Assembly: GCF_963506605.1 (NCBI RefSeq)
Contig: NC_083292.1
Coordinates: forward strand, 31,062,001 to 31,126,000
Origin: Zootoca vivipara
Lineage: Eukaryota
DNA: 64,000 nucleotides
Direction of reading: 5' to 3'
The position numbers and the translations under genes were made by a program. This document shows positions 11,418-53,921 of the stretch, in pieces. Position 1 is the first letter of the stretch. Each line of letters opens with the position of its first letter. A model generated the notes under the pieces. That model did no database searches, was not told where the DNA came from, and was given only the letters and a program-made list of their open reading frames with translations.

Positions 11418-12313
11418 TTTTTCCCAAATAATTTTTATTCAATTTTTCCAATTAACAACAAATTAAAACAAAAAAAACAATCTTTTATATAAAACATCTT
11501 ATATTTTTCCTCTTTCACCTTGCTCTGCCGAGCTGTGACTTCCCCCCCTCCCTTCATGCGGGTTTCTTATTAACTCCATTTTTTGCAGTTCCTTATTGTC
11601 TTTTTTTCAATCAATTCGTAGGATTTATTTCAATCCTGCAAGTGTTTTTAAACTTCTACAATTTTTCTCCATATACCGTGTTTCTCATATTATAAGACAT
11701 GTCTTATATTTATTTTTTCCTCAAAAAAACACACTATGACTTATTTTCAAGGGATGTCTTATTTTTTTCCTCCTCCTCCTCCTGCCGCGGCCGGCATTGC
11801 TGCTGCGCCTATCACTGTCTTATTTTCGGGGTATGGCTTATATTCCTTGAATGCTTAAAATCTTGCTATGGCTTATTTTATGGGTATGTCTTAAAATATG
11901 AGAAACAGGGTAGTCCACATATTTACTCCAGTCTTTTTGGAACCTTGTCTCTCCTTGGTCTCGGATTTTGTAAGTCAGTCTAGCTAATTCAGCATAGTCC
12001 ATCATTTTCATCTGCCACTCTTCAATTGTTGGTAGTTCCTGAAGTTTCCATTTTTGGGCTAACAATGTCCTAGCCGCGGTTCTCGCATACATAAACAGTA
12101 CTTGATCCTCTTTTCTAATCTCTCCTCCCATAATCCCTAACAAAAATGCCTCCGGTTTTTTTGGAAAGGTGTACCGGTATTCAAACATCTTTTTCAATTC
12201 ATTATATAACATCTCCCAAAATCTTTTAACTTTGTCGCATGTCCACCACATATGATAAAATTCCCCATCTTTCTCTTTACACTTCCAGCATGCTTTACCA
12301 CTCATTCTGTACA
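11418..12313 (-). mobile_element. L1/Tx1-type LINE, 5'-truncated, with 15-bp TSD
   Basis: ORF2 zinc knuckle CWKC...HMWWTC. TSD cagaagctaaatctt at 11403-11417 and 12314-12328. Confidence 0.85.
11676..11910. mobile_element. Tc1/mariner-type MITE nested in the L1
   Basis: TIRs ccgtgtttctcatattataagacat / atgtcttaaaatatgagaaacaggg, with TA on both sides. Confidence 0.8.
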
Positions 12314-14649
12314 CAGAAGCTAAATCTTAAGACTTTGACAGTTATACATGGGTGGAGGCGGTCCTTCCGAAATCCTGGTTCCCATTCGTTTTTACTGCAA
12401 GGATGGTGAACTTGTGGTCTTCCAGATGTTGCAGGACTCCTTCAGCCCAGTCAGCCAGGCAAGTGATCAGGGATGATTGGGAGCTGTAGTCCAGCAACCT
12501 CTGCAGGGCCACAAGCTCCCCATCCCTAGTTTACTGGGGTAATGACTGCATACAACCAATGCCTGCCTAGTTCAGCATCCTCTTTTCCAGATGCCTCTGG
12601 AACCCCCACAAACAAGGCATGAAGGCAGCCCCCTCCCAGAAATACACACACCAACCTGCATTCCAAATGGAGGATCCATACAACCAACACAGCAGCTCTC
12701 TTTTATCCCCCATTCATCATCCCCCTTTAAAGCAGCCATGGTCATTGCATCTTGTGACAGTGAGTTCCGCAAGTCCGTTAAGCTTCCTGTGAAATTTTCC
12801 CTGCTTCTGCCCTACGTCTACCACCAATCACCTTTTCAAAACCACAGGATCTAGCATTCTATGTAAGTGGAGCCTGCCTGCTGGATCAAACCAGTGGTCC
12901 ATCTAGTCTAGCTTTCAGTTCTCCTAACGGCCAACCAGAAGTCCGAAGGAAGCCCACAGCACAACAGCCCCCTCCCTACTTGCAATTCCCAGCACACTGC
13001 CTCGGACAGCTGAGGGAGAACACAGCCATTGCAGCTAGTAGCCACTTACCCTGCACAAATTTGTCTAATTCTCTTTTACAGCCATCCTTACACAGAACCA
13101 CATGCATATTTCTTGCAGAGAATCATAGTGTTGGAAGGGACCACGAGGGTCATCTAGTCCAACCCCCTGCAATGCAAGAATCTTTTGCTCAACGTGGGGC
13201 TTGAACCCACAGCCCTGGTCTCATGGTCTACACATGAGGATAAGTTAGCGGTCCAAGTTAGTGGCCATCACTAACTCCTGTGGGAGCAAATTCAACAATT
13301 TAGCTATGCCCCACTGTTTGAAGAAGTATTTGTTTTTGTCTGTCCTGAATCTCCCAACCTTCCGTTTCATTGGCTGGCTCAGAGTTCTAGAATTATGAGA
13401 CACAGAGAAAAGCTATCCACCTTCAAGCTGGTGGCCATCACTACATCTGTGAGATAAGAGGGAGGAAAAGTTTCTATCTATCTGCTTTTTTCCACCCCAC
13501 ATGTCTTTTTACAAACCTCTTTTACCATTCTGAGTATTTAATATGGTAATGCTTCGGGATCTAATTCTCCACTCCCCTAACAGCCCCCACCTTGGGGACC
13601 TGCTCTTCATTCTATTTATTTTTTTAAAAGCAAAAGATAGCCCGGAAGAAGAAAAATCAAAATCCACCTCAGAGCAGCACCTTTAATGTTACAAAACAGC
13701 ATGCAAGCTTTTGAGTTTTATTTCTTACTCACCAATTCAACCCTGAAGAAGAGTTTTGGAGAACTGAGAAGCGCGCGCATGCTTGCGCAACATTTTTGCG
13801 GTTGTACCAGTAAAGGTATTGCCGCAATGTGGGTTTTAGGTTTTGTTTTTTAAAAAAATTGAAAGCATTTTCAACTAACCCTTCAGTCAGAAAGCCTCCC
13901 AAAGCACCTTGGTTTAAAAACAAAAAAACAGAAATAAGACAGTCCCTCCCTGCCCTCAGGCTTAAGGTTAAAAACTCATACAAGGAAGAAGGGGAGGAGA
14001 GAGCAGAAGAATGCAAACCCATGATTTGTGTCAAAGCCCCTTCCCCTAAATAGTAATGATTCCTTCTCCCTCTCCCAACTCCTGTTATTTTTTGCACTCT
14101 CTTGCTTCCTCAGTCCCCTGAATTAGGGAGCCGCACTGATGGTTTTTCTCTCCTTCATTCCCCCCCCCCCTCACTTCCAAATTTTAGGGTCGCTTCCTCC
14201 TTTCCAGGTCAATTCTCTCTCCTCTCTCCTGATCTTGGATTTTCAACTCCTCTTCCCTTCAAAATCTTGTATCCCCATCTCCCTCTCCCTCTCCCCCTCT
14301 ACCCAACCCATTCACCCCCCTCTAACCCGCGCCCTGAATTACCAAAATTAGGATCACTCTTTTCTTTCTTCCTCCTGTTTACAGCCAGCAGAGATCCAGC
14401 CACAGTCGCCGGGGCGATGAAGAACTGCCAGCTTCCGTGCCCAATCAAGGCCGTCAACGTCACGGTGGGAGGGAGAGATAAGAACGCTCCTCCTCCTGCT
14501 ACCTTCGGCTCCTCCCACCCCCTTTTCTACCCCCTCCCTCCTCTTTCCACGCTCATTTGATAAGGTAAATTCTCAAAAATGCTTTTGTAAATCGCAGACG
14601 TACCTGCAAAAAAGGGGGAAAGAATTCTTTCTCAATTATTATAGTAGGG

Positions 14650-14785
14650 CAGGCATCCCCAAAATTCGGCCCTCCAGATGTTTTGGACTACAATTCCCAT
14701 CTCCCCCGACCACTGGTCCTGTTAGCTAGGGATCATGAGAGTTGTAGGCCACAACATCTGGAGGGCCGCAGTTTGGGGATGCCTG
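14650..14785. mobile_element. 136-bp hAT MITE, copy 1
   Basis: TIR caggcatccccaaa...tttggggatgcctg; 8-bp TSD tagtaggg. Confidence 0.9.
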
Positions 14786-29057: not shown

Positions 29058-32000
29058 ATGAGCTGGCCAGGCGAGGAATGGAAGGTGGGGCTGCCGTCCC
29101 GGGCCTTGCGGGCCATCGCCGAGGTGGAGCAGCGGCTGGAGCGCCTGCAGAAGGAGCGGCAGCAGAAGCAGGTGCAGCTGGACACCCTCGAGGCCATGAT
29201 GCACAAACAGAGGCAGAAGGTAATTGCAGGGGCCGTGGGGCAGGGAGCTCGTACCTGGCAAGAGTCTCCCATCCTCTGGACACATCTGCCATGCAAGGGG
29301 TTTTCTGTGGTTCCGGTTTGAGGCTTCCATTTGTTATCATAACAATAATGCAGACACCCCCCCCAAGTGTCCCTATTCTCCAGGGAAGATCCCGGATTTA
29401 CAGAATCCATCCCGGTTTCTGATTTGTTCCCAGAATGTCCCGCTTTCCCTTAGGATGTCCCAATTCTCATTGGAGAAATGTTGGACGGTGTGCAGTTATG
29501 TGATCTCTGAGTCAAGGAGATAAGTAACTATACAACCTTTAAAAGACATCTGAAGGCAGCCCTGTATAGGGAAGTTTTTTAACGTTCAATGTTTTATTAT
29601 GTTTTTATATATGTTGGAAGCTGCCCAGAGGGGCTGAGGCAACCCATTCAGATGAGCAAAGTATAAATAATAAAATTGTTATTATTATGGAACAGGGCAT
29701 CCCAATTTTCACTGGAAAATTTTGGAGGGTATTTATACTCTCCAAATTTATTATTTGTACCCTGCCTGTCTGACTGGATTGCCCCAGCCACCCTGGGTGG
29801 CTTCCAACAGAGTATAAAAGAACACAACAAAACATCAGACATAAAAAACTTCCGGATACAGTGGTACCTTGGTTTAAGAACAACTTAGTTTATGAAAAAC
29901 GTGGATTAAGAATGCTGCAAACCCGGAAGTAGGTGTTTTGGTTTGTGAACTTTGCCTTGGAAGCAGAACATGTTCCGCTTCCTGTTGAGTGTGTTCCATT
30001 TGTAAATTGAGTCCTCCGCTGCTATGGGAAAGCACACCTTGGTTTAAGAACGCTTTGGTTTAGGAACGGACTTCCGGAACAGATTAAGTTCGTAAACCAA
30101 GGTACCACTGTACAGGGCTGCCTTCAAATGTCTTCAGAAAGTCATGTAGTTGTTTATTTCCTTGACTTCTGATGGAAGGGCGTTCTACGGGGCAGGTGCC
30201 ACTACCGAGAAGGCCCTCTGCCTGGTTCCCTGTAACTTCCCTTCTTGCAGTGGGGGAACCGCCAGAAGGCCCTCGGCGCTGGACCTCAGTGTCTGGGCTG
30301 AGTGATGGGGGTGGAGACGCTCCTTCAGGTATACAGGGCCGAGGCCGTTTAGGGCTTTAAAGGTCAGCACCAGCACTTTGTATTAATCCAGAGGTGGGGA
30401 ACCTTAGGCCTGCAGGTCAAATGTGGCCCCCAGGCATCTTTCTCTGGCTCTCAGGAATCAGGCTGTATGATATACTCAGCTCCACCCCCTCATCGGTCCT
30501 CCTTTTTTCCCCTGGCTGGCATGTGACCTTGAACTCTGACATTGCCTCTTGCTTGTCTGGCTGGAAGATAGAGGAAAGTGTGTGTGTGTGTGTAAGGTAG
30601 CTGGGATTTTTGTGGCCCTTGATCGGGGGGGGGGGGAATTCCCCTCCCTGAAAACTTTCAAATGTACGCAGTTTATTTTTGTTCGAGCACCTGGGTCATG
30701 GAACTTATACAGTGCTTTTGGGGTGTGCTTCAGAGCTATCCTTACAACAACCCTGTAAGGTAGAACAACATTATTCCCCTCCCTGTTCACTGCAGACACG
30801 CTGCATAGAGTTCCTAGCCCAGAGCGGCCATGGGTCCTACTTTAAAGAGGATGGTCCTCTGTTCTGTTTAAAGACGAAGAGCCTTTAGAACAGGCATGTC
30901 AAACCTGCGGCCCTCCAGATGTTTTGGACTACAATTCCCATCTTCCCCAACCACTGGTCCTGCTAGCTAGGGATCATGGGAGTTGTAGGCCAAAACATCT
31001 GGAGGGCCGCAGGTTTGACATGCCTGCTTTAGAACAAAGAGCACTTGGGAGGTTACTTATCAATAGTCAGCAACTGAGCAAGCCACCTTCAAGACTGCTG
31101 GGGTGCTGAGGCTAAGAAATAATTTGCTTCTAATCTCCTGTGAGCTATGAGGGAGCTGATGTTTGAACCAAACGCAAAACTTATACCATTAACCCAGCCT
31201 TTGCCAACTTGGCGCCTTCCAGAGGTTGTTGGACTACAACTCCCATCAGCCCCAGCCAGAACAGATGGGAACTGTACTCCAACAACTTGTGGAGGGCATC
31301 AGTTGCCGATGGCTGCATTAACCAATATGCCGTCTTGGCTCTTATTCTGCATAGCACTTATGTATTGCTGTTCCCATATGTTCAATTTATGTTGCATACA
31401 CAATTTCAGAGTTCTTGCACGGACCCTGCAAGGTAGGCCAGTGTGGTTATTGCCCCATAGCTCAGGGGTAGAGGATGAAGCCCAGGCCAATTTGCAGATC
31501 CTGGGCTGACTGGAGATTTGCAGTCAGCGAAAGAAGGGTATGAATCTTTTTAAGTTTTCGAAAATTATCAAAAAGCAAGCTTCTAGCTCTCGTGATACTG
31601 GAGAAAAACTCAGGATTATGTCTATAATCTGTGTGCTTTCTTGGCAAATAAAAAAACCAGACTGCAAGCTGGGAAAAAGCACTGGAAGTGCAATAAACCA
31701 GGGGAAACAATGCAGTATCTTTATATGGATCATGAAACTTGATTATTTTTTTAGCGGGGAGTGTTCAGAATGTACCCAGCTGACTCACATTTTGGAGCAA
31801 GGAATATCACTACACTACAATATATAGGCAGGATGTGCAGCAGGAGTGGGGAACCTTTTTCGGTCCGAGGTCCACATTCCCTTCTGGCCAACCTTCTGAG
31901 GGCCGCATGCTAATTGTGGGTGGGGCCCTAGACAAAAGTGGGTGGAGCAAGGAATGCAAATATTACATACAACCCTACACACCTTTCTGTGCTCCATCCA

Positions 32001-35000
32001 AAGAAGCAAGAGGCACGAACAGAGTTCAAGGGCACATTCCAGGCAGGCAGAAACAAGTTGTGTGTGCAAAGGATGGGTATGTGGCTCAGAAAGATTCCTG
32101 AGGGCCAGATAGAGAGCCTTGGAGGGCCACATCCCTGATGTACAACCAACATTGGTTTGCACCCAACAGAGTTTGCACTGAACTGAAATTGGGTGACGCA
32201 TTTTCATTCATTTCGACAGGTCTCCTCTGAGCAGGGCTGGATTGGAGCTGTGATTCCTCCATTGCCGGGGGCTGGACTAGATGTCCCTTGGGTGCCTTCC
32301 AGCTCTACAATTCTATGATTCCGTGGACACAAACCACCTTGCTTTTTTTGGTTTTGTTTTAATGCGGCTCATCTCTTGCTGTTCTTTGCAGCACGAAGAG
32401 GAACGGGCCTCGTGGGCCCTTCTCTCTCAGGAGAACAGGAGTCTGGCCGAGGCGTGTGAGCAAGTGGAGCGTAGCCGTCAGCGGTTGGCGCAGGAGCTGC
32501 AAGCCAAAGAAGCCCAGCTGAGCTGCCTGGAGGCTCAGCTCGCTCAGGCCACCCGACGCCAAACGGAACTGGAAGAAGAGCTGCGTAGGTACAGTGCAGG
32601 AAACGTTGCTGGGATTCGTGGGGTCGGTGGGTTTGGCGTCACACGGACAGAGGCGAAAGCAGCAGTCTGTGCCCCTCGGGTTTGCAGGCTTGTCGGGTGG
32701 AAGCAGAATTCAGTAGCCAGGTGCAGGGATCCTAGGAACAACTTTTAAAATAACAAAACAAGTTTCTAGACCTGAAGGCCGTGAAGGAAGGGGGGGGCGC
32801 CATGCTTGATGAAATCGCAGAAGTCCGAGGGAAGGAGCTATGCTGGATTTCCATGGCTCAAAGGACAGGGCTTCAGTGTCCTAGACAGCCGTTTGGTCTG
32901 CCTGGTGCTTACAGGAGCAGAAGAAATTATAGCACAGTCAGCAGATATATGCAGATTAGTTTGATTTCCATAAATCTGTGCAGGTGGCAAAATCTCTGAG
33001 CTTCCTTTGGTAAATAAAAGCTGGCGTTTGGAGCATGCAAAATGCTCTGTGTACATTCGCTCAGTAAGTCTTACAACAACCCTGTAAGGTAGGACTCTTG
33101 CATTATGGTTCAGGGTGGGTGGGGGTTAAAATGGAAAACATGCAGCCAAGCACCTTCTTCAAAACAGTGGCCAATTAGACAGGGAATCGGAGGTATACGT
33201 CTCCCAACAGTGGCATAGCCATTGTGGCTAGTACCCAGTGATAGCAATGGGTTTGTCTAATACTTTTTAAAAAACCCTCCAAGCAGGTGACCACCACAAA
33301 ACCTTCATTCATTCATTCATTCATTCATTCATTCATACCCCACCCATCTGATTCAATTGCCATAGCCACTTCAGGTGACTTCTTTGTCAAGGACAAAACA
33401 AAAAGCCTGATGGAGAGTTTATACCAGGCATCCCCAAACTGCGGCCCTCCAGATGTTTTGGCCTACAACTCCCATGATCCCTAGTTAACAGGATCAGTGG
33501 TCGGGGAGGATGGAAATTGTAGTCCAAAACATCTGGAGGGCCGAAGTTTGCGGATGCCTGGTTTATACCCTCCAACATTTCTCTGATGAAAATAAAGGTA
33601 AAGGGGCCCCTGACCATCAGGTCCAGTCGTGTCCGACTCTGGGGTTGCGGCGCTCATCTCGCTCTATAGGCCGAGGGAGCCGGCGTTTGTCCGCAGACAG
33701 CTTCCAGGTCATGTGGCCAGCATGACAAAGCTGCTTCTGGCGAACCAGAGCAGCGCACGGAAACGCCGTTTACCTTCCCGCCGGAGCGGTCCCTATTTAT
33801 CTACTTGCACTTTGATGTGCTTTCGAACTGCTAGGTGGGCAGGAGCTGCGACCAAGCAACGGGAGCTCACCCTGTTGCAGGGATTCGAACCGCCGACCTT
33901 CTGATCAGCAAGCCCTAGACTCTGTGTTTTAACCCACAGCGCCACCTGGGTCCCAGGTGAAAATAGTGAAATGATGAAAATAGTGACGTCCTATTCCTAT
34001 TCCATCGTCATCATCATGTTACTGTTCATACCTCATCTGACTGGATTGCCTCAGCCACTCTGAGTGGCTTCCAACATATATAAAAACACAATTAAACATT
34101 AAAAAAAACTTCCCTAACCAGGGCTGCCTTCAGATGGCTCAGGGGTCAGATAACTCCATAAGCTCCAACATTTCTCTGATGAAAATAGGGACGTCCTAAG
34201 GAAAAGCAGAGCCTAGGGCTTGCCGATCAGAAGGTTGGCAGTTCGAATCCCCGCGACGGGGTGAGCTCCCGTTGCTCGGTCCCTGCTCCTGCCAACCTAG
34301 CAGCTCGAAAGCACGTCAAAGTGCAAGTAGATAAATAGGTACCGCTCCGGCGGAAAGGTAAACGGCGTTTCCGTGTGCTGCTCTGGTTCGCCAGAAGCGG
34401 CTTTGTCATACTGGCCACATGACCTGGAAGCTCCCTTGGCCAATAACGCGAGATGAGCGCCGCAACCCCAAAGTCGGTCACGGCTGGACCTAATGGTCAG
34501 GGGTCCCTTTACCTTTTAAGGAAAAGCAGGACATTCCGGCATCAAATCAGAAACCAGGATGGCTTTTGTAAATCTGGGACTGCCCCTGAAAATAGGGATA
34601 CTTAGAGGGTCTAAGTGTTTGAGGGATGCTTTGCTACCCCAAGCCAAATTCCAACGTATTTTGGGGTCATATAATGCCCCTAAACAAAATACGTTGGGAC
34701 AATAGATTTGAACTTCTTAAGTTCTACTTTCCTGGATCAGTTCTTTATTTGGAGCATCCCATGAAACAAAAAAGCAAAAAAAAAAGCTGGTACATTCCAT
34801 TGGCTGGAGTAAAAAGTTCCCCAGGTACAGGATCTCACTGCAGACTGGTACACACAGGTACACTGCCTATGACCATGGAGGATCTCCTTTCTCCTGTTTC
34901 CTTCTCTCTGCCTCCCTCCAGGTGCCAAATCGAACTGGACAAGCTGCAGTCGCAGTCCCACTTGGCCCTCCTGCCCCCCCGCTGGGGTTCCTCCACGCCG

Positions 35001-38000
35001 TGGGCCGAAGGTAAGAAACCGGAAGCTGAGGAAAGGGCACAGGGTCCTCTTAGGCCAAGCCTGCAAGCAAGAGGCGCCTCTTCCTACGTCCGGGGATTAG
35101 AAGCTTTGCCAGATGGAGGTGGAATTAGCGGCTGAAGAGTCACGGGAAAGAGTCAAGGCAGTGTCTGTGACTTCGTGGCGGGGGGGGGGGGGGGAGAGAA
35201 GGGCTTGTCAGTTGAGGGATTTAGATTTAGATTTATTTAGGGCATTTGTACCCCCACTCTTCACCCAAAAAGGCTCCCACAAAGCCTTGCATACAGGACC
35301 GTCCCTGCCCACAGGCTTTACAATATGAAAACAAGACAAAACACGACACACAAGGGAAAAGGGACACGGAGGGAAGAGGAAAATCAAAACTCTGGTGGCT
35401 TGGAGATGGGGCGGTAGTCCACAGCGGAGTAGTTTTGCTCGTGTCTATATAACCTACTACCACAGGTAGGCTTTATTCAGTCTGCAGGCCCAAATTGGTT
35501 CCCCAGGCAACCAGTTCTCCCTCTGTTCTCTAGGTGCCATCGAGGCCAAAGCAGAGCTTAGCAGGACCCTTGCAGCCGGAGCAAGTGTGAGTATTGCTTT
35601 AATCTGGCTTTGGAACAGCCATCGCCAACTGGTGCCCTCCAGGCGTTTTGGACTCTGGCTCCCATCAGCCAGCGCTGGTTGAATCCGATGGGACTTGTAG
35701 TCTAGGACACCTGAAAGGCTTCAGATTGGCAGAGTCTGCTTTTAAAGCTGGTCTTTCTCTTACTCATTTCCCACTTTCCAGCAGATTCAGGATAGCAGCC
35801 CTGCTGTTAGAGGCCCCTGCGGGAAGGAGAGCCCCGCCGCCTCCTGGCAGCAAGAAGCGGCTTGTCCCAGTGCCCCACCTGGGAGCCCCATCCCCACAGA
35901 GAATGGCGAAGGGGCCCAGGCGATGGCATCGGAACTGGCATCCATGGGAGAGAGGCTGGAGAAAGAAAATCAAGGTATCGGAACGTGGTCTGTAGGTTTT
36001 TAAAAACCATGCGGCCCTCAGAATTCCGCCCGGCCCTCAGAACTCTCCCCGGACCACAATTCTCCCTGGCCTTGCTGGGAATGCGTGAGGCTTACCATGC
36101 AAACGCTGCATTTGCATCCTCACCCCACCCACTTTAGACTCTGGCCCCACCCACCATGTGGCCCTCGGAAGGGAATGTGGCCCTCGGGGTGGAAACGGTT
36201 CCCCACCGCTGCCTGAGCAGCTTTTCCTTTTCCCTCCTCTGCCATTCAGAGTTGAGACTCGCTCTTGGCAAAGCGGAAACCCGGATGCAAGAAAAGGAAA
36301 GGGAACTATGGAATTTGCAGGGGCAGCTGGAGTTGATCCGAGCTGAGCTGGCTCAGTGGAAGAAGCAGCGAGGCGGCCAGACGGAGGTGAGTAGGCATGA
36401 GACTCTACATTTCAGGATCACGGGCTCGAGCCCCACGTTGAGCAAAAGGTTTCTGCACTGCAGGGGGTTGGACTAGATGACCATCAGGGTCCCTTCCAAC
36501 TTAAGGTTGACTTAAGGCTGAGCACACAGCTCCAGTGCCAGCCTTTGTCTATGCCATGGTGGCCTGCTTGACCAAACCTCTGGTGTTGAGGCTCTGGGAG
36601 GGGTCTATGCTACTGTTGCCCGGCTGACCAAAGCTCTGGGTCTTGCAAAACCAGGCTGGCAGCAGACTCATACGTTTTGGTGAGACCCTGGTGGGCCATA
36701 TTGTGGAACAAACTGGTATGGTAGTCCAAATTTGCCACATCCACACAGAGAGGGCAGCAGTGGGAGAAAGGGCAGGATGTGGGTGATTGCAGCCTATAAG
36801 TATCTAATCCCAACCGAATTTATGCACACATCTGTGTGGCTCCTTTTAAGAAATACTATTATTAGGCAGGGCTTTTTGTGGGAGGGGTACGTAAAGACAC
36901 TAAACCTGCATGGTTCCAAAGGCGGAAAGGCATCCTCATGTCCTCTCCGAGGGGCGCTGTTAGTTTCGCTTTTTAACTGTGCATGTGCCTCACCGTAATG
37001 GCCTCTTTTGTCTCCACAAGCAACCCTGTGAGGAGGGCTATTAATATTCCAAACAGAGGAAGAGCGATTGCAATACTTGCTCTAGCGGCCCCATCCAAGA
37101 GCAGTAATAGTTGAATGGGGAACTGGGCTGATTTGAATCCAGCCCTTGCCCTCCCTAGTTCGACTCTTCAATTCCTAAACAGCTCCTGTGCCTCTACCTG
37201 CCTGTCCTGTCCTGTTAGGAGTTCAGGCTTCCAGCTTGGTGGAGGAGCTTTGAGCTCCACCACCTGCTTTTCAGAAAGAGGCTTGTCTGCAAAGTGTTAG
37301 CCTCCCCTCCCCCTGCAGAAAGGGTGCATCTATTGCCCCTCACTGGGCTAGCACGGGAGGACTGTGATTATGAATTTGCAAAAGGAAAGGAAGGAAATGA
37401 CCCCCAAACCACCCTGCTCTCTCTTAAATGAGGCATCCCCCTGCCTTGTAAAAAGATAAACAAACCCACATCATGAAGTTCTGGTCCATCAGGGCAATGG
37501 TGAACTGCCCTACCAACCTCGGTCTTTGCCTCAAACAGCCCCCACCTGCCTTTCTTCTTTCTTACAGCCAGTCCAGGTGGTGGCCCTGCCTGCCAGAGTC
37601 CTCCTCCTTGGCCTCAGCGTTGCCCCTTGTAGAACTCAACAGGAAGGTGGATGGGGACCAAACTAGCTTTGGTTGGCTCTGCCTGCCATTGGCTCTGGCG
37701 CCACCTACTGGTGGGCTCCCTGCCTTCTGCCCTACCGGTTCTAATGGGCACCAGCTACTGCTGGTGTGAGAGAGAAAGGGAATCCACGACCACCCCCTAA
37801 ATCCTGGCCCCAGCTCTGCGCAAAACCATGACGAAGCAACCTTGCTGGTTGGGTATTCCCCCCCCCCCTTCCTCGTGCACCGCCTGACATGTTTTACGAG
37901 GCCCCGTGTCCTCGTTGGTTGGCCGGGCACAATTATTAGCACCATTAATTATATCGGCTGTGTTTCTTCGCAGGAAACGCTACCGAAGATAGCAGCCAGT

Positions 38001-41000
38001 GTTTCCCATCACCCACCCTCCCCTCCGGCCCCCAATCTGCAGGTGGAGAGTTTTACAAGGCTGCAGCTCATCAGCCGAGTGCCTTTTTACAAGCTTCTTC
38101 TCGGGAACAGGTCAAGGGAGTCTTGGCAGCGCTGGAGGTTGCAGGGGACGGGGCGGGGGACGGCGGCAGGCACTTTTATGCAAGATGCTGGCTGCAGAGC
38201 AGCCCGATCCAGCCTCTCCGTTGGCTGCAACACCAGCGGAACCAGCAGGGCTTCGCAATTCCTGCCTCTTTGGGAACTCCAGGCCTCCCTATGCAGTCCT
38301 CAGGGCTTTCCCCAGCCCAGGCCCCCTCCCAGTTGACACCCCTCACCAGCCTTGCTCCTCGCTGTCCTCAAAATGGTCCTGTGCTGTGCCCTTGAATTGT
38401 GACCATTCTTCAACTGCCTGGCAACAAGGTGGATAGATAGATGTGTAGATTTGGGGCCTAGACACCTCTGCCTTTCCCCTCATGGCTGTAGCGTAGCCCA
38501 TAATACAACAACACATAGGGTGCTCTTTCCTCTTAATGATGTAAGAGTCTGGCTGCTGGATCAGGCCAATGGCCCATTTATTTCAGCATCCTTCTCTCCC
38601 AATGGCCACTGGGCTATTGCTCAGGTGAGGACGTTTCAAGTGGCGTCGCAGCGGTTGACATTTATTGCCTCCCTCTAATGGATTAGAGTTCCTTTCTTTT
38701 TCTTCCGTTCCAGAGCAGCCCCCTGGAAACCAGAGGGAGCCGGCCGTCAGTCGATGTGGGAGACCTGCGCCAAAGAAGGCACCAGCAAAAGGTGGGCTAA
38801 TCTTCCTAACATATTGTTGCACGCCACCCCAATCTCTGTGCGGTGCAAATCTCCAGTAGTTTCAGGCACTTATCTGGGATTGGTGTTTACTTTTGGAAAT
38901 GAGGCATAGCTGAGACCGTGGTGTCCTTATGATATATGGTTTATTTCCACATATATACAATCCAAGCCTACAGTGGTGGGTTTTACAGCATTTGCATCCC
39001 AATAGGGTCTTGCTTCTCTCATAGCCGCAGCCTTGGATTCAAACAGAAATCAATCACGGCTCTCAAACACACTCCGGCTTGCTGCTTTACTTCCAGGTCA
39101 AATCACTGCGACTATAACGCTGGCTTCGTCCTTCTTCTAACTAACCATGAGTTTGCTGTCTTGCACAGAGCCACTTTCCTTTGTTTTCCTTAATGGCTCA
39201 TCTCCCAGGCTATCGCCTCAACACTAGGGTTGCCATGTTTCAAAAAGTAAAAACCAGGACACCCCGAAAGTTGTTGAGCTGTTTTTTATACAAAAAACAC
39301 CCCCAGAAAGAAGAGTTTTTGATTGACTTCCCTAAGATCCAGCGCCCCCGGATGTATCTAGCCTATTTCCTCCTCCCCCAAACTCATAACTATAATATAA
39401 TATAATATAGTATATAATGTAAACCATACACATGTGCTATGGGCTGCTTTCAAACAGTGAGGTCAGGCAGAACTGCAGTACCAAGAATCCTTGGGTGCAA
39501 AATAAGCAGCAATTTATGATAACGCCATCACTGATATGTCACAAAGTTAATGAAGACTTGTAGCAACCAAATCATCCAATTAAGCTGAATGTTGGATGAT
39601 TCAGGACAGGTAAACAGAAGTCCTCCTTCGTGCAGCGCAAACTATGGAACTCACTCCCACCGGAGGCAGTGATGGCCACAAACCTGTTGCTGTTTAGTCG
39701 TTTAGTCGTGTCCGACTCTTCGTGACCCCATGGACCAGAGCACGCCAGGCACTCCTGTCTTCCACTGCCTCCCGCAGTTTGGTCAGACTCATGTTTGTAG
39801 CTTCAAGAACACTGTCCAGCCATCTCGTCCTCCGTCGTCCCCTTCTCCTTGTGCCCTCAATCTTTCCCAACATCAGGGTCTTTTCCAGGGAGTCTTCTCT
39901 TCTCATGAGGTGGCCAAAGTATTGGAGCCTCAGCTTCAGGATCTGTCCTTCCAGTGAGCACTCAGGGCTGATTTCCTTCAGAATGGATAGGTTTGATCTT
40001 CTCGCAGTCCATGGGACTCTCAAGAGTCTCCTCCAGCACCATAATTCAAAAGCATCAATTCTTCGGCGATCAGCCTTCTTTATGGTCCAGCTCTCACTTC
40101 CATACATCACTACTGGGAAGACCATAGCTTTAACTATACGGACCTTTGTGGGCAAGGTGATGTCTCTGCTTTTTAAGATGCTGTCTAGGCTTGTCATCGC
40201 TTTTCTCCCAAGAAGCAGGCATCTTTTAATTTCGTGACTGCTGTCACCATCTGCAGTGATCAAGGAGCCCAAGAAAATAAAATCTCTCACTGCCTCCATT
40301 TCTTCCCCTTCTATTTGCCAGGAGGTGATGGGACCAGTGGCCATGATCTTGGTTTTTTTGATGCCACAAACCTAGATGGATTCAAAAGAGGACTAGGCAA
40401 ATTCATGGAATAGAGGCCTACTGCTCTGCCTCCGCAGCTGGAGGCAGCAATTCTTCTGAATACCAGTTGCTGGAAACCACAGGAAGGGAGAGTTCTCTTG
40501 TGCTTGGGTCCTGGTAGCAGGTTGTCCACAGGCACCTGACTGGCCGCTGTGAGACCAGGATGCTGGTCTCTCTTTTTAAGTTCTTGGCAGTGGCTGTATA
40601 AGGTCCTCAGGCAGAGAGAATTCCCTTTAAGACTTCTTTAAATTGTGATTGAAGCAGGAACCTTCTGCACACAGAGCAGGTATTCTGCCACAGAACTGCC
40701 GCTTCTCCATGTTTTTGAATTTTTAAAAAATGTACAAGCAGCTCCCCATTTACATACATTCAAGGCACAAGCAACTGCGCATGTGCACATCGCTGCGAAC
40801 CTGGAAGTGGCACGGAAAGGGGCAAAAGCGGCCCTAAGAGAGTGCGAAAATGGCAGAAATGGTGCAAAAACAGCGCCTAGCAATCCCAGGAACCTTTGCA
40901 CCGACCATTGAGGCCTGTGGAGAGTTGAGGTTAGGTAAAGAGAATGGCATTAATGTCAGACCTGCAGACACTCGTGCTTGCTTATAGAGAATGAGTCATG

Positions 41001-44000
41001 AATAGCTGAAGCCTTAGCAATGTATTAAATGGTTCAGTGATTTGACAGTGTCCGCACTCAATTTTTTCCTTACATGTGTCTGATGTAAGCATGGAACAAC
41101 ACTCTGCAGGTTTTATTGGAATGTCATTTTAATATAAGATTAATAAAGTACTCTTTGAGTTGCCTTAACTCAGGACCCTTCTGCCACGATATTTGCAACA
41201 AAGGAAAAGGCCACGGCCTGAAAAAAATTGGTGGACCAGAATAATAGTCTCCAAGAAAACAACAACAACCCAGACTCCTTTCTTTTGCCAACTTTCTCTT
41301 TTGCAGTGGGGGCATCAAAGCAGTCATTGGACAGACATGGGTGCAAAAAGTGGCCTTGTGCCTTGTGCCTCTGACCTCTCTGCTCTTAACACCCACTTTC
41401 AAAACAGGGCCTGCTTGGGACAGAAAAGGTGCCCTCTAGTGGCAGCCGTCGTAGCATAAGCTCTTCCCGCTTGGAGCAGCCGGCTGAGAAACGGGGAGCT
41501 CACACCAAATTGAAAGGTGGGACTCTGCGCATGTTTTTTGTGTGTGTTTGTGTTAGATGGCAGGGATGTAAAGAGCAGTCTGCATTTGTTTTTGTCTTTG
41601 CAAGAATCGCGAGCCTTCAGTCCTTGTTGTATTTATCCCTGGTCATGGCTATATAGAAATGTGTTTGCATATTGTGATTATATTTTGTATGTTATGTATA
41701 GTATTTCATATATGGCATACCTTTCTGGTATATATATGGAATAGTTATATTTTGTATTATATGTAGCTTTCATGCACAGTAGGTGTATGGGTTTGATCCA
41801 GTGTCCTACTCAGAGTTGTTATTGTTTAGTTGTTTAGTCGTGTCCGACTCTTCATGACCCCATGGACCAGAGCACCCCAGGCACTCCTGTAGACCTTTGA
41901 AATTAATAGATATGACCAATTTAGGCCCATTCATTTAAAAAAGTTTCCTACAAGCAGAACTTAGTTGGATTCCACCCTGTTTTGCTTGTATTATGGCATT
42001 TTTCAGTTGTAGGGTAATCCCTTGCTAACAAGGGAACAAGTTTGCAAGTTAATAAATTAATAATATTTTTATTTTTCTTTAAAACTCTGTTAACTGTGCT
42101 TTTCTTTCATGTGTTCATTCCTGGTTATAGTTACAGTGGTGCCTCGCTAGACGAATTTAATTCGTTCCACAGGTCTTTTCTTATAACGAAAAATTCGTCT
42201 AGCGAATCCCATAGGAATGCATTGATTTTTTTTGTGGATTTTTTTTTGCCCATAGGAACGCATTAATTGAATTTCAATGCATTCCTATGGGAAACCGCGA
42301 TTCGCTAGACGAATTTTTCATAAAACGAAATTGTCTAGCGAGGCAACCTCTGCTCAAAAAATCATTTCGTTAAGCGGAAATTTCGTTAAGCAGGGCATTC
42401 GTTAAGCGAGGCACCACTGTATACTCCATTTTTTTCTCCTAAGAGCTCAAGAGTTCATGGTTCTTCTCACTCCCCATTTCATCTTCTCAAAAACCCTGTG
42501 AGTTAGACTGAGAGACTGTGACAGCCCCCTGCCAAGATGACCCAGTGAGCTTTCATTACTGGGTGGGGGGATTCGAACCCTGGTCTCCCAGGTCCTAGTC
42601 CAGCACCCTAACCACTGCACCACGCTGCTGCTCCAGATTTTATTACCTATACTAGTTCTAAAGGAGGAGTAGCCCTTTAAACTAGGGATGTAACCTCAAT
42701 CCTAAATTTGGATGATTTAAGGCTACCTAGTTAATGGATGACAAACCGGTGAACTGGTTCCCCCACTAACTGTGTTTGAACTCCTCCTGAGTGGGGAGGA
42801 ACAGAAATATTTTTTTTCTTTTGATGGATAGTGTCAGAGGTGAGTGCTGTGTCTGTGTGGCTATTTATAAGTGTAATACCTAGTAATAAAAAATACGCAA
42901 TTGAAATGTTGTGCATTCATATTCAGAAGCTTGCATTTGAACTTCCAGGAACTCTAATTAAATCATTTTTCCCCTGTTGTCCAGGTGTAAAGAATTGGAG
43001 AATGGAGGATTTTTTAAATTATATGTTTCTTTAAAAGAAATATATGGGGCTGGATTCAGTGAATGCGTCCCACTAGTGAAAGCTTCCGCTAGTGCCGTGG
43101 GGCTCTCCCCCGTCGGCTCCCTCCTCTGCCCTCCATGTCCCCCAAGACTTTGGGGGGGGTTGGGAGACACACACACCCCGAACGGTGTGTGGGGGGAGGA
43201 GAGGGCAGATCCTTCCACCAGGCAAGCCGTCCGAAATGCTTTTGCTGACAGAGTGATCTCCTTAGCACTATGTTGAATTCCTCCCCAACCCATAATTTTT
43301 TTTTTTAATGCAAGGGAGCATTGCAAGCAAGATTTATACACAGAATGGTCGAACGTAATATTTTTGCCTCCAGATCCTGACTCCTGATTTCGGCACACCT
43401 GATTCAGACTGTGCCCTCAGAGTAGACCCATTGAAATTTCGCTTGCTGCTTTTTCTCTCCACGCACCCACCAGCACTAGCAACTTGCCGCATGCAGTTCA
43501 ATTTTTGTTTTAATTGAGGCTTCTTTCAAAACACATTTGAAGCACGCAGCTCCCCCCCCCAAAACCCTGGGAACTGTAGTTTGTTATGGGTGCTGGGAAC
43601 CACAGCTCCGTACAGGGGTAAACTACGATTCCCAGGATGCTTTGGAAGTGTGCACTTAAAATGCAAGACCTGAATGACAAAATTGTGATTTTATCTCTTT
43701 TAACTACAACGTATCACTGTTCTCAGGCCTTCTCTTCTCTGCCATCTCTTTCCTCAGGCTTTCCCTCACCGAGCTCCCGGGCCCAGAGTACGGAGCGGGG
43801 CCGGGAGGAACTACAGGCCCTCAGAACCGAGGTTTTGATGTTGCGGCGCCGCCTGGATGCCTCGGAGAGCCAACGCAAAACCCTCCTTGAGGCTTGCTGG
43901 CAGCAAGAGAAAAGCCGGGCCTGGGCCCAGAAGAGGCAGTTAGGCCCACTGGTGGGAGCGGCGGGCTGGCAAAAGACAAAGGACTCCCCAGAGATCCATG

Positions 44001-47000
44001 GGGATTGCCAGGCCCCCAGGAGCAAAGGACAGGCCTTGGCGGGCGGCGGGGAAGTCTCTGTGGCAGAAGAGGTTGAGGAGGAAAGAGGGGCACTTGAACC
44101 CGAGGCTGTGGCAGAGCCGGGGAAGGCGCTGGCCTTGGACGTAGAGACGTCTGAAACAGGAGAAGATGCACCAGCGCCAGCCCCACGGCAGGCCCATGGG
44201 AAGACTGAAGCAGGGGGCCAAGGAGGCAGGACCCCCGACCTGGAGGGGAATGTGGAAGGTTTGCAGGAGAACCTCTTGGACTTGGCCTCCGGCAAAGCCC
44301 AAGCTGAGGCCCAAGCCATCTTGGCCCAGGAAAAACTCCAGGTCCTGCAGGCCACGCTGGGGAGGCAGACGGAGCGGTTGGCGCGAGCCATGGAGACCCA
44401 GAGCCGCCACGTGGAGGAGCTGCTGGCGGACGCCGAGGAGAAGGAGCAGCTGATGAGGAGCCTCCGGCAGGAGCTGGAGGAGACCAAGAAAGCCTTGGAA
44501 ATGGCGGACGACGAGGGCCAGAGGCTGCGGGCTCTGCTGGGGCAGAGGGAGGCGGAGGGGCACCACCACGCAGAAAGCCCCTCAAACACCTCGGAGGTAC
44601 GCGGAGGCAGCGAGGCCTCGGAGGTCCCTCTGGTGTCGGCCCAGCTGCAGGGAGGCATGTTGAGCACTGCGGACGTTGGTCTAGCGGGACGTCTGCCCGA
44701 AGAGAAGCAGGTTCAGCCTGGAGTCCAGGAACAGGTAAGTTTATTCTCCTCGAGGCGTGCTAGGAATTTTTTATGGATTTTAATTGTTGAAAGCCTCTTT
44801 GTCCCACTCTCCCGCCAAAACCAAAAAGCCCGTGGACCAGCTTACAAAGGTCATTGATGCTATCAGTCCCTGCCTGTGGTTTGCAATATAAAAGACACAA
44901 AACAAAAGGAAAAGGAATTCGGAGGGAGAAGGGGAGGGCAAGCCAGATCCAAGGCTTACACTATTTAAAGAAAGAGAGAGCATTTGGAATATATATATAT
45001 TGGGGGAGAGGGGGAAGGGGGTGCTGAGCACAAAATTCCTCTTGCCAGGTGTCTGGACTGATCTCTTGCAAGTAACCTTTTGAAATCAGGCCTCAGGCTA
45101 TCCAACTTATTGCACTGCTTTCCCCTGGGGAAAATCGTTCTTAGGCTCTCAATCAGAGCGAGCTGCAATTCTGGTTTTCTCTGGATGGATTGATGTTTGC
45201 TCCAGTTTAGCACTAAAGCTTGGGTTTTCCCTGGGAAAGGATCGGGGCAAGAGGGAAACGGAAAGTGCAAATCAAGCAGGGGGGCAAGCGGAAGTGTGGG
45301 CGAGCTCTTAGCGGTGTCCGTTTTCTGTCTGCAGCTGGAGGCCTCTCTTGCCCAGCTTCAGCAGGAAAACCTGGTCCTGCGCAAGGAGCTGGCTACCTGG
45401 GAGGCCTGGCACCAGAAAAGAGGAGAGGAGGACACCACTGGCCCCTTTGAACTGGTCGGCTCGGGAAATGGCAGAGAAGCAGCCGAGATGGCAGATGGTA
45501 AGGGGGGGGGGCATAGAATATAGGAGGAGAGAATCCAAACTGGGGGAGGAAGAGAAGAGGAATACCTTGTTTCGTGCACTGGGAAATCATCTGCAGCATA
45601 CATTTAAAGCACTATGATATCACTTTCAACAGCCATGGCTCCCACCCCCACCCCACCCCCAGAATCCTGGGAACTCAATCTCATCTTGCGCCTTTTTTTA
45701 TTCTTTTGTTCGTCAGTATACCTATTTCCTTACTGTCCATTTTGATATTCAATATTTTGGGCCTTCCTCTCCCCCCCCCATTTATCCCTTTAATTTCCGC
45801 TGCTTTTGTTGCCAAATTATAATATGATATCATTTTTAGTAGCCAATCCTCCTTAATTGGTACCCCATTACTCTTCCAATTGAGATTGGTTGGAAGCACT
45901 AAAGGGTGGGTGGAGAGTTGGGTGGTGGGGGAGTTTGTTTTCTTTTTAATTAAGTAAAGATTATTTTTTAGTTCTTGTATCTTAGGTTAGTTTGCGTTAT
46001 TTTTCCTTTATTTTGATTTATTGTAATAATATTTTGATTATGGCAAAAAAAATTGTAAATTGTGCGAAAAGTTAATAATTTTTTTTAATTTAAAATAATA
46101 ATAATAATAAAAAGAATCCTGGGAACTCCCCTCAGAGCTACAGTTCTCAGAGTACTTCCCAGGGAACTCTGGGAATCTCAGCTCTCAGTACCCATAACAA
46201 ACTACATTTCCCAGGATTCCTTGGAGGAACATGGAGCCAAATATTTCTCCTTTTTTTGAAATGGCAATGTTTTTCTTTTTAGCACAGGAAGGTCATGGGG
46301 GAAACCGGACATCTCTTCTTTTGTCACCGCACAGCTGCCCCAATAACCCCAGTTTGCTAAGGGTGCTGGGAACTGTAACTGTGAGGAGCAAACTACAACT
46401 CCCAGGATTGTTGGGTAGGGTGCTTTAAATATCTGGTGTATATGTACCCTAATTCAAGGCCTCTGTGTCAACTTGCAGTTCCTGAAGCTTCCCAGAAGAG
46501 AGAGCCCTTGTCTCAGGGGAGCCGGCGAAATGTCCAGACCCAAACTGAAGGACTAGAGTTTGGCCATCGGCGCAGGGAACGTGTCTCCGTGGCCTTTGAT
46601 GACACTCAGTATGAACCCTACGGGCTCCCTGAGGTGGTCATGAAAGGTATGTGGGGAATCGGGGAGGGGAAGAGACAAAGGAAGCACCACAAGGCCATCA
46701 GTGGTACCATGAGGTGAGTTTAGAGCAGGCATCCCCAAAAAGCGGCCCTCCAGATGTTTTGGCCTACAACTCCCATGATCCCTAGCTAACATGACCAGTG
46801 GTCAGGGAAGATGGGAATTGTAGTCAGAAACATCTGGAGGGCCGAAGTTTGGGGATACCTGGTTTAGAGTCTGGACTTAATGTACTTATGGTGGAAACCA
46901 AACAGCCATGGCTCCCCGCATAGAATCATGGGAACTGTAGTTTGCTGAGAGCTTTTTTAGGAGGCCTCTCTATTCCACTCACAGAGCCAGAATTCTGAGA

Positions 47001-47629
47001 GTTCCCAGTGAAGAGAGATGGATTGTTACACCACTCTGAGAACTGCAGCTTTGTGAGGGGAGTTGCTAGTCTCCTAATAGCTCTCAGCACCTTTAACAAG
47101 CAACAGCTCCCATAATTCTTTGGGGGAGCTTGTAGCTGTTAAAGCAGTATAACAGTGCTTTAAAACAGAGACGGATTTAAGGCAGTGCGACCGGTTCCAC
47201 TGCATTGGGAGCCAAGCCTAGCTGGCACCACAACTATGACACAATGAATTGAGCAGAACAAAAATGCAGCCAGAAATACGGTTAGAAAGTATATAAAATG
47301 TTTGTTTAATGGGAAAGTGCATTGAGGAGCATGGGATGGTACTATTTTAGGGTGAATGCATACGTTAGTTTGCATGCAAACCTTTCAGCTGAAAGGAGAT
47401 TTTTTCAACTTGAAAACGTACCAGAAAAGGACACCCCACACCACTGTGTCTGCTTTAGCAAATCTGGCTTCGTTTCTCCCCTGCAGGCTTTGCTGACATC
47501 CCATCCGGTCCCTCTTGCCCATACGTTCTCCGCCGGGGCATTTTGGGAAGTGCCCCCGTTGCCCAGCTGGCACCGCGAGCAGAACCAGAAGAGGATTCCC
47601 CTGAGGCAGAGGAGGGGACGGGCGTCTGA
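29058..47629 (+). CDS. Centromere protein F-like (miniature CENPF paralog); exons 29058-29219, 32392-32588, 34922-35010, 35534-35586, 35782-35974, 36250-36386, 38714-38791, 41408-41516, 43758-44734, 45335-45497, 46479-46646, 47487-47629; ~822 aa
   Basis: The N-terminus MSWPGEEWKVGLPSRALRAIAEVEQRLERLQKERQQKQVQLDTLEAMMHKQRQK aligns with recalled CENP-F MSWALEEWKEGLPTRALQKIQELEGQLDKLKKEKQQRQFQLDSLEAALQKQKQK. Further matches: R|CQIELDK, SWQQE, EKENQ|ELR, and C-terminal YEPYGLPEVVMKG|FADIPSGPSCPYVLRR (CENP-F FEPEGLPEVVKKGFADIPTGKTSPYILRR). All 11 introns are GT-AG and the phases chain into one stop-free ORF of 2469 nt. Exons 35534, 38714 and 41408 are supported only by splice signals and phase. 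Confidence 0.85.
29859..30110. mobile_element. Tigger/pogo-like MITE inserted in an L2 3' fragment
   Basis: TIR cagtggtaccttggttta...taaaccaaggtaccactg with TA TSD. The L2 fragment continues at 30113-30380 (-). Confidence 0.85.
30891..31026. mobile_element. 136-bp hAT MITE, copy 2
   Basis: TIRs; TSD ctttagaa. Confidence 0.9.
33425..33560. mobile_element. 136-bp hAT MITE, copy 3
   Basis: TIRs; TSD gtttatac. Confidence 0.9.
33594..33957 (-). mobile_element. Sauria (POM-type) SINE, full length
   Basis: tRNA-like head, (ACCTTT)n tail, and tgaaaata repeated on both flanks. Confidence 0.85.
34210..34516 (+). mobile_element. Sauria SINE, 5'-truncated
   Basis: 13-bp TSD taaggaaaagcag (34197-34209, 34517-34529). 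Confidence 0.88.
39686..40362 (-). mobile_element. BovB (RTE) LINE, 5'-truncated, inserted into a CR1-like fragment
   Basis: Uninterrupted 216-aa RT C-terminus (DFIFLGS...EIKRCLLLGRKAM...IDAFELWCWRRLLRVPWTARRSN...HGVTKSRTRLND). 11-bp TSD gccacaaacct (39675-39685, 40363-40373). Confidence 0.92.
41815..41890 (-). mobile_element. Short BovB 3' end
   Basis: Near-identical to 39686-39760. Confidence 0.75.
42134..42419. mobile_element. Tigger/pogo-like MITE
   Basis: TIR cagtggtgcctcgct...agcgaggcaccactg; TA TSD. Confidence 0.85.
43758..44734 (+). CDS. Large coiled-coil exon of the CENPF-like gene
   Basis: It lies inside the 406-aa ORF 43637-44857. Strong polypyrimidine acceptor at 43757 and donor CAG|gtaagt at 44735. 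Heptad-rich E/L/Q/A/R segments. Confidence 0.85.
46726..46861. mobile_element. 136-bp hAT MITE, copy 4
   Basis: TIRs; TSD gtttagag. Confidence 0.9.
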
Positions 47630-47783
47630 GAACAGCCTACCAGGTAAGAGATCCTGGTGTCTAAAACAGCTGCACCGCCCCGGAGTCAGCTGCAGTTTTG
47701 AGTCGGGTGTGGAAGCCCTGTTTGCATTTTAATGCAATAATAAATTATATGCCTAGCATATGGGGATTAGTGGCAGGAGAACA

Positions 47784-47839: not shown

Positions 47840-47975
47840 CAGGCATCCCCAAACTGCGGCCCTCCAGATGTTTTGGCCTACAACTCCCACGATCCCTAGC
47901 TAACAGGACCAGTGGTCAGGGAGGATGGGAATTGTAGTCCAAAACATCTGGAGGGCCGAAGTTTGGGGATGCCTG
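47840..47975. mobile_element. 136-bp hAT MITE, copy 5
   Basis: Same TIRs and body; the TSD is not preserved. Confidence 0.85.
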
Positions 47976-48568
47976 CCTGTCTGTTACCATCTTCAAATAT
48001 CTAAAAAGCTGTCACATGGAAGTTGGAGCAAGCTTGCTTTCTGCTGCTCCAGAGGAGAGGACCACAACCAATGGATTCTCCTTCACTGGAGGTTTCCAAA
48101 CAGAGTTCAGGTGGCCATCTGTCAGCGGTTCTCTAGCTGTGATTCCTGCACTAGGTGTCCCTTCCAACCCTACACAGTATTATGATTGTCTGAGGACCTC
48201 TCCGTCCTGCCTACATTTGAGCATATGCCATACAGTATTTCAATTTCGTGCGGATGCCTATTTGGATGTTTGCAGGGCTTACACATTAACTTACCTGTTT
48301 AATATAAATGCACAAACTGATGGTTCCTTTGTCTGCAATGTCAGTTGATGATGGGGGTTTTCCCCACTGCTGTTAGACTCATTAAGCATTCTGTTCAAGT
48401 GAAAACAGAGTGGGGTGAAAGGGAAAGAAGCGACAGCTCAGTGGTCGAGCATGCCAGGCACCTCCAATTTAAAAGGGTCTGTGTTAGCAATTGATGGAGA
48501 AGACAAAACCCTGGAGACAAAACTGCCAATCTGAGCAGACAATCCCGAGTCTTCTCCCTCACTGCATA

Positions 48569-53778: not shown

Positions 53779-53921
53779 NNNNNNNNNNNNNNNNNNNNNN
53801 NNNNNNNNNNNNNNNNNNNNNNNNNNNNNNNNNNNNNNNNNNNNNNNNNNNNNNNNNNNNNNNNNNNNNNNNNNNNNNNNNNNNNNNNNNNNNNNNNNNN
53901 NNNNNNNNNNNNNNNNNNNNN
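53779..53921. other. Assembly gap (143 N)
   Basis: Run of N. Confidence 1.

Follow-up and report, generated by a model that had tools for sequence, protein, structure and literature searches.

Background

CENP-F, also known as mitosin or LEK1, is a protein of about 3000–3200 amino acids (aa) which binds the mitochondrial GTPase Miro through a short segment. Direct binding to Miro1 and Miro2 requires residues 2977–3020 of the human protein, and these residues also suffice for it (PMC4538849, PMC10897228). Within this segment F2989 is taken up by the ELF pocket in Miro's first EF-hand (ELM1) domain, a salt bridge links D2991 to R263 of MIRO1, and the residues ILR 3001–3003 form an antiparallel beta-strand in trans with the Miro GTPase1 domain (PMC10897228). 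Binding of CENP-F to Miro is abolished by G2988A or F2989A, T2997A does not abolish it (PMC6428352). The clients of the ELF pocket described by Covill-Cooke et al. 2024 comprise CENPF, TRAK1/2, MYO19, MTFR1/2/1L, VPS13D, Parkin and yeast Mdm34 (PMC10897228). Here we describe a CENP-F-like gene that lies in a stretch of 64,000 nucleotides (nt) from the lizard Zootoca vivipara (contig NC_083292.1, positions 31,062,001 to 31,126,000 of the forward strand), referred to as the window in the following, and whose product carries the same type of motif.

A preliminary description of the locus, made from the letters of the window, had ascribed to the encoded protein a Miro-binding GFADIP motif without a CAAX box and had proposed an adaptor between mitochondria and microtubules. 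What it took as established about CENP-F agrees with published work: the Phe of the motif mediates Miro binding (PMC6428352, PMC10897228), the N-terminus binds microtubules (PMC4477864), and farnesylation as well as the Bub1-binding coiled coil support localization at the kinetochore (PMC6028960).

The predicted Miro-binding motif of the CENP-F-like protein

The window holds a genuine CENP-F family gene with 12 coding exons on the plus strand (29058–47629), amounting to 2469 nt of coding sequence or 822 codons and a stop. The coding region was delineated by tblastn with the orthologues from Podarcis, Lacerta and Elgaria, which showed 81–100% identity to the window per exon, and splice sites were read directly; exon phases were checked against the tblastn frames and found to be in agreement. 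The identities assign the window to a lacertid lizard. Window exons were searched singly, and the orthologue P0009 from Podarcis lilfordi served as the full-length proxy for the window protein.

The motif lies in the interval 46590–47540, which runs from the last part of exon 11 through intron 11 into exon 12. Direct reading bore out the letters and coordinates given for it in the preliminary description, with one correction: exon 11 ends at 46646 and not at 46647. Exon 11 (46479–46646, plus strand) encodes the first half of the C-terminal block and reads ...YEPYGLPEVVMK before the GT donor at 46647 (equally given as ...TQYEPYGLPEVVMK or ...VAFDDTQYEPYGLPEVVMK). It closes with ...RRRERVSVAFDDTQYEPYGLPEVVMK plus one base, the first of a Gly codon. 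Intron 11 (46647–47486, 840 nt, GT...CAG) splits the motif between Lys and Gly-Phe, the Gly codon itself being divided (G / GC) at 46646/47487–88. Exon 12 (47487–47629) completes the Gly and encodes FADIP...VLRR, the tail and the stop. From 47487 it reads (G)FADIPSGPSCPYVLRR, followed by 30 residues to EEGTGV and by TGA at 47627–47629. The (G)FADIP codons occupy 47487–47503, where Phe (47489–47491) corresponds to human F2989 and Asp (47495–47497) to D2991 (PMC6428352, PMC10897228). The Val-Leu-Arg codons at 47525–47533 are the counterpart of the CENP-F strand ILR 3001–3003 (PMC10897228).

We determined the conservation of the block among 24 orthologues from fish to lizard in sliding windows. 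Majority identity reached 0.98 in the 25-residue window that contains the block, compared to 0.65–0.78 in the N-terminal 100 residues and 0.18–0.71 in the remainder. In an alignment of 22 sequences (A1), the stretch from Tyr776 to Gly808 (numbering of P0009) is invariant at 27 of its 33 positions, compared to 24% identity averaged over all columns. The block, previously described as the best-conserved part of the C-terminus, is thus the best-conserved part of the whole protein. The invariant residues include G788, F789, D791, V801, L802 and R803. D791 follows the Phe by two residues, as does D2991 in CENP-F, and Val-Leu-Arg begins exactly 12 residues past the Phe, again with the spacing found in CENP-F. 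At the sequence level the motif is therefore intact, with Gly, Phe, Asp and strand all kept at identical spacing. Invariance extends upstream of the mapped Miro contacts to DDT-x-YEPYGLPEVV.

The AlphaFold2 model of P0009 consists mostly of long helices of the coiled-coil type (residues 27–147, 224–285, 363–412, 523–623 and 672–705) with disordered linkers between them. From residue 706 to the end at 834 no secondary structure is predicted, and the predicted local distance difference test (pLDDT) score is below 50 at almost all positions: residues 742–777 and 798–834 score below 50 and the block between them scores in the 40s. Conservation is thus highest in a part of the protein that is predicted not to fold by itself, a hallmark of short linear binding motifs. 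Disorder of this kind is to be expected of a motif that takes up its fold upon binding.

Canonical CENP-F was compared by way of the Pfam profile, the published residue numbers and the human sequence. Relative to the human sequence, which fits the published residue numbers, the paralogue differs within 2988–3004 at five positions only (2994, 2996, 2997, 2998 and 3001). A Cys inside the motif (x-C-P-Y/H; codon 47516–47518, column C798 of A1) is invariant from sawfish to lizard. At this position canonical CENP-F carries the Ser of an S-P dipeptide. The difference could mean a loss of proline-directed phosphoregulation, which we regard as a lead rather than a result; a redox or a regulatory difference from CENP-F is also possible.

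Canonical CENP-F and the paralogue both contain PF10481, PF10490 and long coiled coils, and they share Gly-Phe-Ala-Asp-Ile-Pro followed by a strand of the type hydrophobic-Leu-Arg 12 residues past the Phe. The lizard protein differs in having about one quarter of the length of CENP-F, in that its N-terminal domain is recognisable only up to about position 132 of 304, and in giving no match to a leucine-zipper or internal-repeat domain. Invariant residues specific to the paralogue are found within the block itself (EPYG, VVMK and SGPxCPY). To the ELF-pocket clients as a group it is similar in placing the Phe in a disordered segment (FADI, as in CENPF and MTFR2), with a Gly before it, an acidic residue after it and an x-Leu/Arg strand downstream, the latter as in CENPF, TRAK and MTFR. 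It differs from them in that its Miro binding is predicted.

Family membership and distribution

PF10490, the profile of the CENP-F C-terminal block (named 'Rb-binding'), matches exon 11 at profile positions 4–22 (E = 1.4e-6) and exon 12 at positions 23–42 (E = 2.3e-8). Both matches exceed the cut-off of 21 bits, so the resemblance to the CENP-F block is not due to chance. The full-length orthologue P0009 matches PF10490 with E = 5.9e-20 and PF10481 (CENP-F_N) with E = 3.6e-38, the latter over profile positions 1–132 of 304 only. Pfam found nothing beyond these two terminal domains in full-length orthologues.

When the largest exon was searched against 1.84 billion representative proteins, six clearly related proteins were found (E = 4e-64 to 1e-15), all of which start with MSWPGEEW and finish with the same C-terminal block. 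The gene is annotated automatically as 'centromere protein F-like' in at least 13 lizards (746–931 aa) and at least 13 turtles (about 800–1227 aa). Further homologues are present in three caecilians, the lungfish Protopterus, the sawfish Pristis, paddlefish, reedfish (2138 aa), sturgeon (2091 aa) and more than 100 teleost clusters (1222–1966 aa). None of the homologues found came from mammals, birds, crocodilians, frogs, salamanders or snakes; the searches were limited by length and word matching, so that absence from these groups is unproven. A full-length orthologue of 740 aa, closest to the skink Lerista (67% identity) and ending in the same EEGTGV, is encoded on a Logan contig of 2959 nt. 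A gene with 12 exons would not fit into this length by far, so the contig represents a spliced transcript.

The fish and amphibian 'centromere protein F-like' proteins (1200–2138 aa) agree with the lizard protein almost letter for letter in the orthologous C-terminal block and share its N-terminal start and its short ending without CAAX. Fish and caecilian members differ in having the complete N-terminal domain of 304 positions, two to three times the length, and acidic tail ends (EETD, IDP) where the lizard protein has Thr-x-Val.

Some teleost members bear the zebrafish clone-based placeholder name si:dkeyp-115e12.6. Other automatic names within the family are rootletin-like, trichohyalin, PAN1-like, WW domain-binding protein 11-like, testis-specific serine kinase substrate-like, GRIP and coiled-coil domain-containing protein 1-like and plain 'centromere protein F'. 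A literature search on si:dkeyp-115e12.6 and 'CENPF-like' returned nothing relevant to the gene, and one on CENPF in lizards added no information. No canonical CENP-F was among the matches listed by the protein searches; in one of them the best 120 of 220 matches were all of the paralogue type, and another listed proteins of this type only. Searches of the Protein Data Bank with exon 12 and with the reedfish protein P0008 gave no match, and a look-up of the N-terminus in the ESM Atlas gave generic coiled-coil neighbours only. The CENP-F-like protein is a real, widely distributed and little-studied paralogue of CENP-F. Its motif would make the protein the second Miro client of the CENP-F type, one that is found only in some vertebrate lineages.

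The C-terminal ending

In all of the approximately 190 homologues with the motif the stop follows 29–46 residues past GFADIP. The distance amounts to 41 residues in all 33 lizard and turtle sequences, 32–39 in ray-finned fishes, 34 in caecilians, 46 in the lungfish and 29 in the sawfish; human CENP-F runs on for about 120 residues further. The window protein ends in ...GTGV, and a Cys at position -4, as required for a CAAX box, occurs in only one of the approximately 190 homologues (Platysternon megacephalum P0006, ...CTSV). We considered this Cys as a relic of an ancestral CAAX box and rejected the idea: other turtles end in GTSV or GTSI, so it reflects a Gly-to-Cys change in a single lineage. 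The preliminary description was thus right in noting the missing CAAX box, and it was equally right about the missing basic tail. The tail of the window protein (47537–47629, including TGA) comprises 30 residues past LRR with a net charge of -6 and ends in Thr-Gly-Val. In lizards and turtles the last 187 residues have a net charge of -13 to -14 and an isoelectric point (pI) of 4.6–4.7 (about 4.6 in the lizard paralogue), whereas the C-terminal 187 residues of CENP-F form a highly basic microtubule-binding domain (PMC6028960).

A YCSLL-like string, reported as missing from the window protein, was found in none of the homologues examined, a weak negative given that no canonical CENP-F sequence was aligned alongside. 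Upstream of the block we detected no segment that is conserved across vertebrate classes, nor one recognisable as Bub1-binding or kinetochore-targeting. Where the earlier view has to be revised is in treating the short, acidic, CAAX-less ending as a trait of a lizard 'mini' form. The ending is common to all homologues including the proteins of 1300–2138 aa; since sawfish, teleosts and lizards share it, it dates to the origin of the paralogue and is not tied to the small size of the lizard protein.

Of 37 sequences from lizards, turtles, caecilians and the lungfish, 36 have a free C-terminus of the form [ST]-x-[VIL], the pattern of class I PDZ ligands (47618–47629 in the window). Lizards end in TGV or TGI, turtles in TSV or TSI, caecilians in SGV and the lungfish in SIL, while the remaining tail has diverged between classes. 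Pogona (EASL) is the exception, and the pattern is missing in the sawfish and in ray-finned fishes, the latter ending in EETD, IDP or similar. By this pattern the C-terminus is a candidate class I PDZ ligand.

Downstream of the stop, a donor-like GTAAGA after CAG is located at 47644–47649, 14 nt past the stop (CAG/GTAAGA at 47643/47644). It may mark an intron in the 3' untranslated region (3'UTR) or be a relic of an ancestral exon boundary. An AATAAA at 47739–47744, 110 nt past the stop, is the sole canonical poly(A) signal over the following 1.3 kilobases. With the donor-like site unused, the 3'UTR would be short; the protein is the same either way.

The N-terminal domain

Lizards and turtles match only positions 1–132/147 of the 304-position CENP-F_N profile, reedfish and caecilians match positions 1–304. 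The N-terminal CENP-F fragments for which binding to microtubules is documented are limited to those of 385, 436 and 558 residues, and tubulin cross-links of the human protein were mapped to K83 and E174 (PMC4477864). The equivalent of K83 lies inside the part retained in lizards and turtles, E174 lies outside of it. The N-terminal 150 residues of the lizard protein are near neutral in charge and not highly basic. The earlier claim of a retained microtubule-binding N-terminus therefore stands in part: the CENP-F_N head is present (exon 2, E = 4.1e-13), but less than half of the domain is left, it is not basic and E174 lies outside the retained part. Whether the reptile protein would bind microtubules is uncertain on these grounds.

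Remaining exons and neighbouring features

Exon 1 (29058–29219), taken from the list of open reading frames (ORFs), covers the first part of the CENP-F_N domain. Its translation starts with MSWPGEEWKVGLP and is 100% identical to residues 12–67 of P0009. Exon 2 (32392–32588) encodes CENP-F_N coiled coil and matches PF10481 at profile positions 56–122. The following exons were placed by tblastn and splice sites, all on the plus strand: exon 3 at 34922–35010, exon 4 at 35534–35586, exon 5 at 35782–35974, exon 6 at 36250–36386, exon 7 at 38714–38791, exon 8 at 41408–41516, exon 9 at 43758–44734 and exon 10 at 45335–45497. Exon 10 has 163 nt, which is not a multiple of 3. It is skipped in the predicted isoform X3 of Podarcis muralis (P0016), with the result that the frame of exon 11 is shifted and the GFADIP block lost; this isoform may be non-productive or may have a regulatory role.

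Intron 11 contains a copy (46726–46861) of a palindromic interspersed repeat of about 150 base pairs that resembles a miniature inverted-repeat transposable element or a short interspersed nuclear element. Further copies were located at 14645–14785, 30880–31033, 33412–33568 and, just downstream of the gene, 47840–47976. The repeat matches its own reverse complement, and the copies are 73–94% identical to one another. An ORF on the minus strand inside an intron of the gene (39694–40344) resembles, by eye, a fragment of the reverse-transcriptase or long interspersed nuclear element type, as were the ORFs 7744–8127 (plus strand) and 11838–12314 (minus strand). An intronless ORF of 302 aa at 1894–2802 (plus strand) contains a full aldo/keto reductase domain (PF00248, E = 1.4e-46). 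Partial ORFs neighbouring the CENP-F-like gene gave no Pfam match. A run of 143 N at 53779–53921 represents an assembly gap or a masked stretch.

Discussion

We favor the view that the CENP-F-like protein is a Miro client that carries its coiled-coil head to mitochondria rather than to kinetochores, and assign to it a probability of about 0.6. The Gly-Phe of the motif would insert into the ELF pocket of the ELM1 domain of Miro, the Asp two residues on would make a salt bridge with the Miro arginine, and the Val-Leu-Arg strand 12 residues downstream would pair with the GTPase1 domain. Recruited in this way to the mitochondrial outer membrane, the protein would bring its N-terminal CENP-F-type coiled-coil head to mitochondria and not to kinetochores; both the mitochondrial localization and the absence from kinetochores are what we infer from the motif and the ending. 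Binding to Miro through the motif is the firmest part of this proposal, a well-founded and probable prediction. That the protein also bridges mitochondria to microtubules, as had been proposed in the preliminary description, appears doubtful.

Several points weigh against the favored view. Five positions of the motif differ from human CENP-F, and they include the invariant Cys in place of the Ser of the S-P dipeptide. The N-terminal domain of lizards and turtles, reduced to less than half and not basic, makes the microtubule half of the adaptor idea weak. The literature search found no paper on this group of paralogues. Finally, mice carrying the Phe-to-Ala exchange in CENP-F are healthy (PMC6428352), hence even a real Miro interaction may have subtle consequences.

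The motif evidence would serve equally well for a protein that has no working microtubule site and acts on Miro as a competitor or clustering factor instead of as a microtubule adaptor. It would then occupy the ELF pocket against TRAK, MYO19, MTFR, VPS13D, Parkin or canonical CENP-F. Alternatively it would cross-link Miro molecules, provided that it is a dimer as presumed. Such a role would fit the single Miro pocket shared by many clients (PMC10897228), the truncation of the N-terminal domain in lizards and turtles, and a near neutral N-terminus combined with acidic last 187 residues, as both microtubule-binding domains of CENP-F are highly basic (PMC6028960). We nevertheless consider it unlikely: the N-terminal 130 residues or so rank second in conservation within the protein, which points to a separate function of this part, K83 as one of the two sites cross-linked to tubulin in human CENP-F falls inside the retained part, and the N-terminal domain is complete in fish and caecilian members. 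The block might also serve a partner other than Miro, for example the pocket proteins of the Rb family for which PF10490 is named, or some further one. The Miro-binding region partly overlaps a reported Rb-binding motif (PMC6428352), and the invariant DDT-x-YEPYGLPEVV represents more conservation than the published Miro contacts need. Against this, Peterka and Kornmann did not detect an Rb interaction (PMC6428352), and the 44-residue CENP-F peptide alone binds Miro directly (PMC4538849), single changes of the G or F being sufficient to abolish binding (PMC6428352). The paralogue keeps exactly these residues together with the spacing of the downstream strand, which renders a different partner improbable.

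A protein of this family could still act at kinetochores or at the nuclear envelope, reaching them by pairing with canonical CENP-F via the N-terminal coiled coil or by an unrecognised targeting helix. The helix encoded by exon 10 (residues 672–705 of P0009) comes into consideration here, as it is moderately conserved among lizards and turtles (0.65–0.67) and lies about 90–110 residues ahead of the Phe, roughly where the Bub1-binding coiled coil of CENP-F ends. The helix cannot, however, be aligned between sauropsids and fish or caecilians, the homologues examined contain no YCSLL-like string and Pfam finds only the two terminal domains, so that we regard a kinetochore role as quite improbable. 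Least probable of all is that the stop at 47627 is not the true end and that splicing within exon 12 leads to a downstream exon with a longer C-terminus and possibly a CAAX box. The strong donor-like CAG/GTAAGA suggests that a downstream exon may exist, but it sits after the stop and its use would give a 3'UTR intron only. Exon 12 has no good donor ahead of the stop, the tail is conserved up to the stop with equal length in 33 of 33 lizard and turtle sequences, all fish have a similar short ending, and an AATAAA follows 110 nt downstream. Together with the skink-type transcript contig, which encodes the same ending, this makes a hidden CAAX exon very unlikely.

The favored view of a Miro client can be extended to a more speculative scenario that we consider rather improbable in its entirety. 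It depicts a second CENP-F gene of jawed vertebrates, apparently not of mammals or birds, kept for more than 400 million years for its coiled-coil head and an unchanged Miro-docking peptide. The product would be a dedicated Miro client free of cell-cycle regulation and, in the lobe-finned lineages from lungfish to lizards, also a PDZ-type ligand tying mitochondria or peroxisomes to a PDZ scaffold and the cytoskeleton. The cell-cycle-free part is based on the invariant Cys of the paralogue standing where CENP-F has the Ser of S-P.

CENP-F has tasks at microtubule tips and mitochondria as well as at kinetochores and the nuclear envelope, and because of this multitude its Miro interaction is hard to study in CENP-F itself. 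The paralogue represents a natural separation-of-function version of CENP-F, stripped by evolution of the farnesyl box, of the basic C-terminal microtubule domain and, in reptiles, of most of the coiled coil. For genome annotation the family matters since many of its members are now mislabelled. Zebrafish hold the gene (si:dkeyp-115e12.6), which offers an easy genetic test of its effect on mitochondrial distribution. The Miro-binding peptide has remained near letter-perfect from the relatives of sharks and from fishes to lizards, which argues that the Miro contact is under strong selection by itself. If the favored view is true, the CENP-F-like protein would be a further client for the single ELF pocket of Miro.

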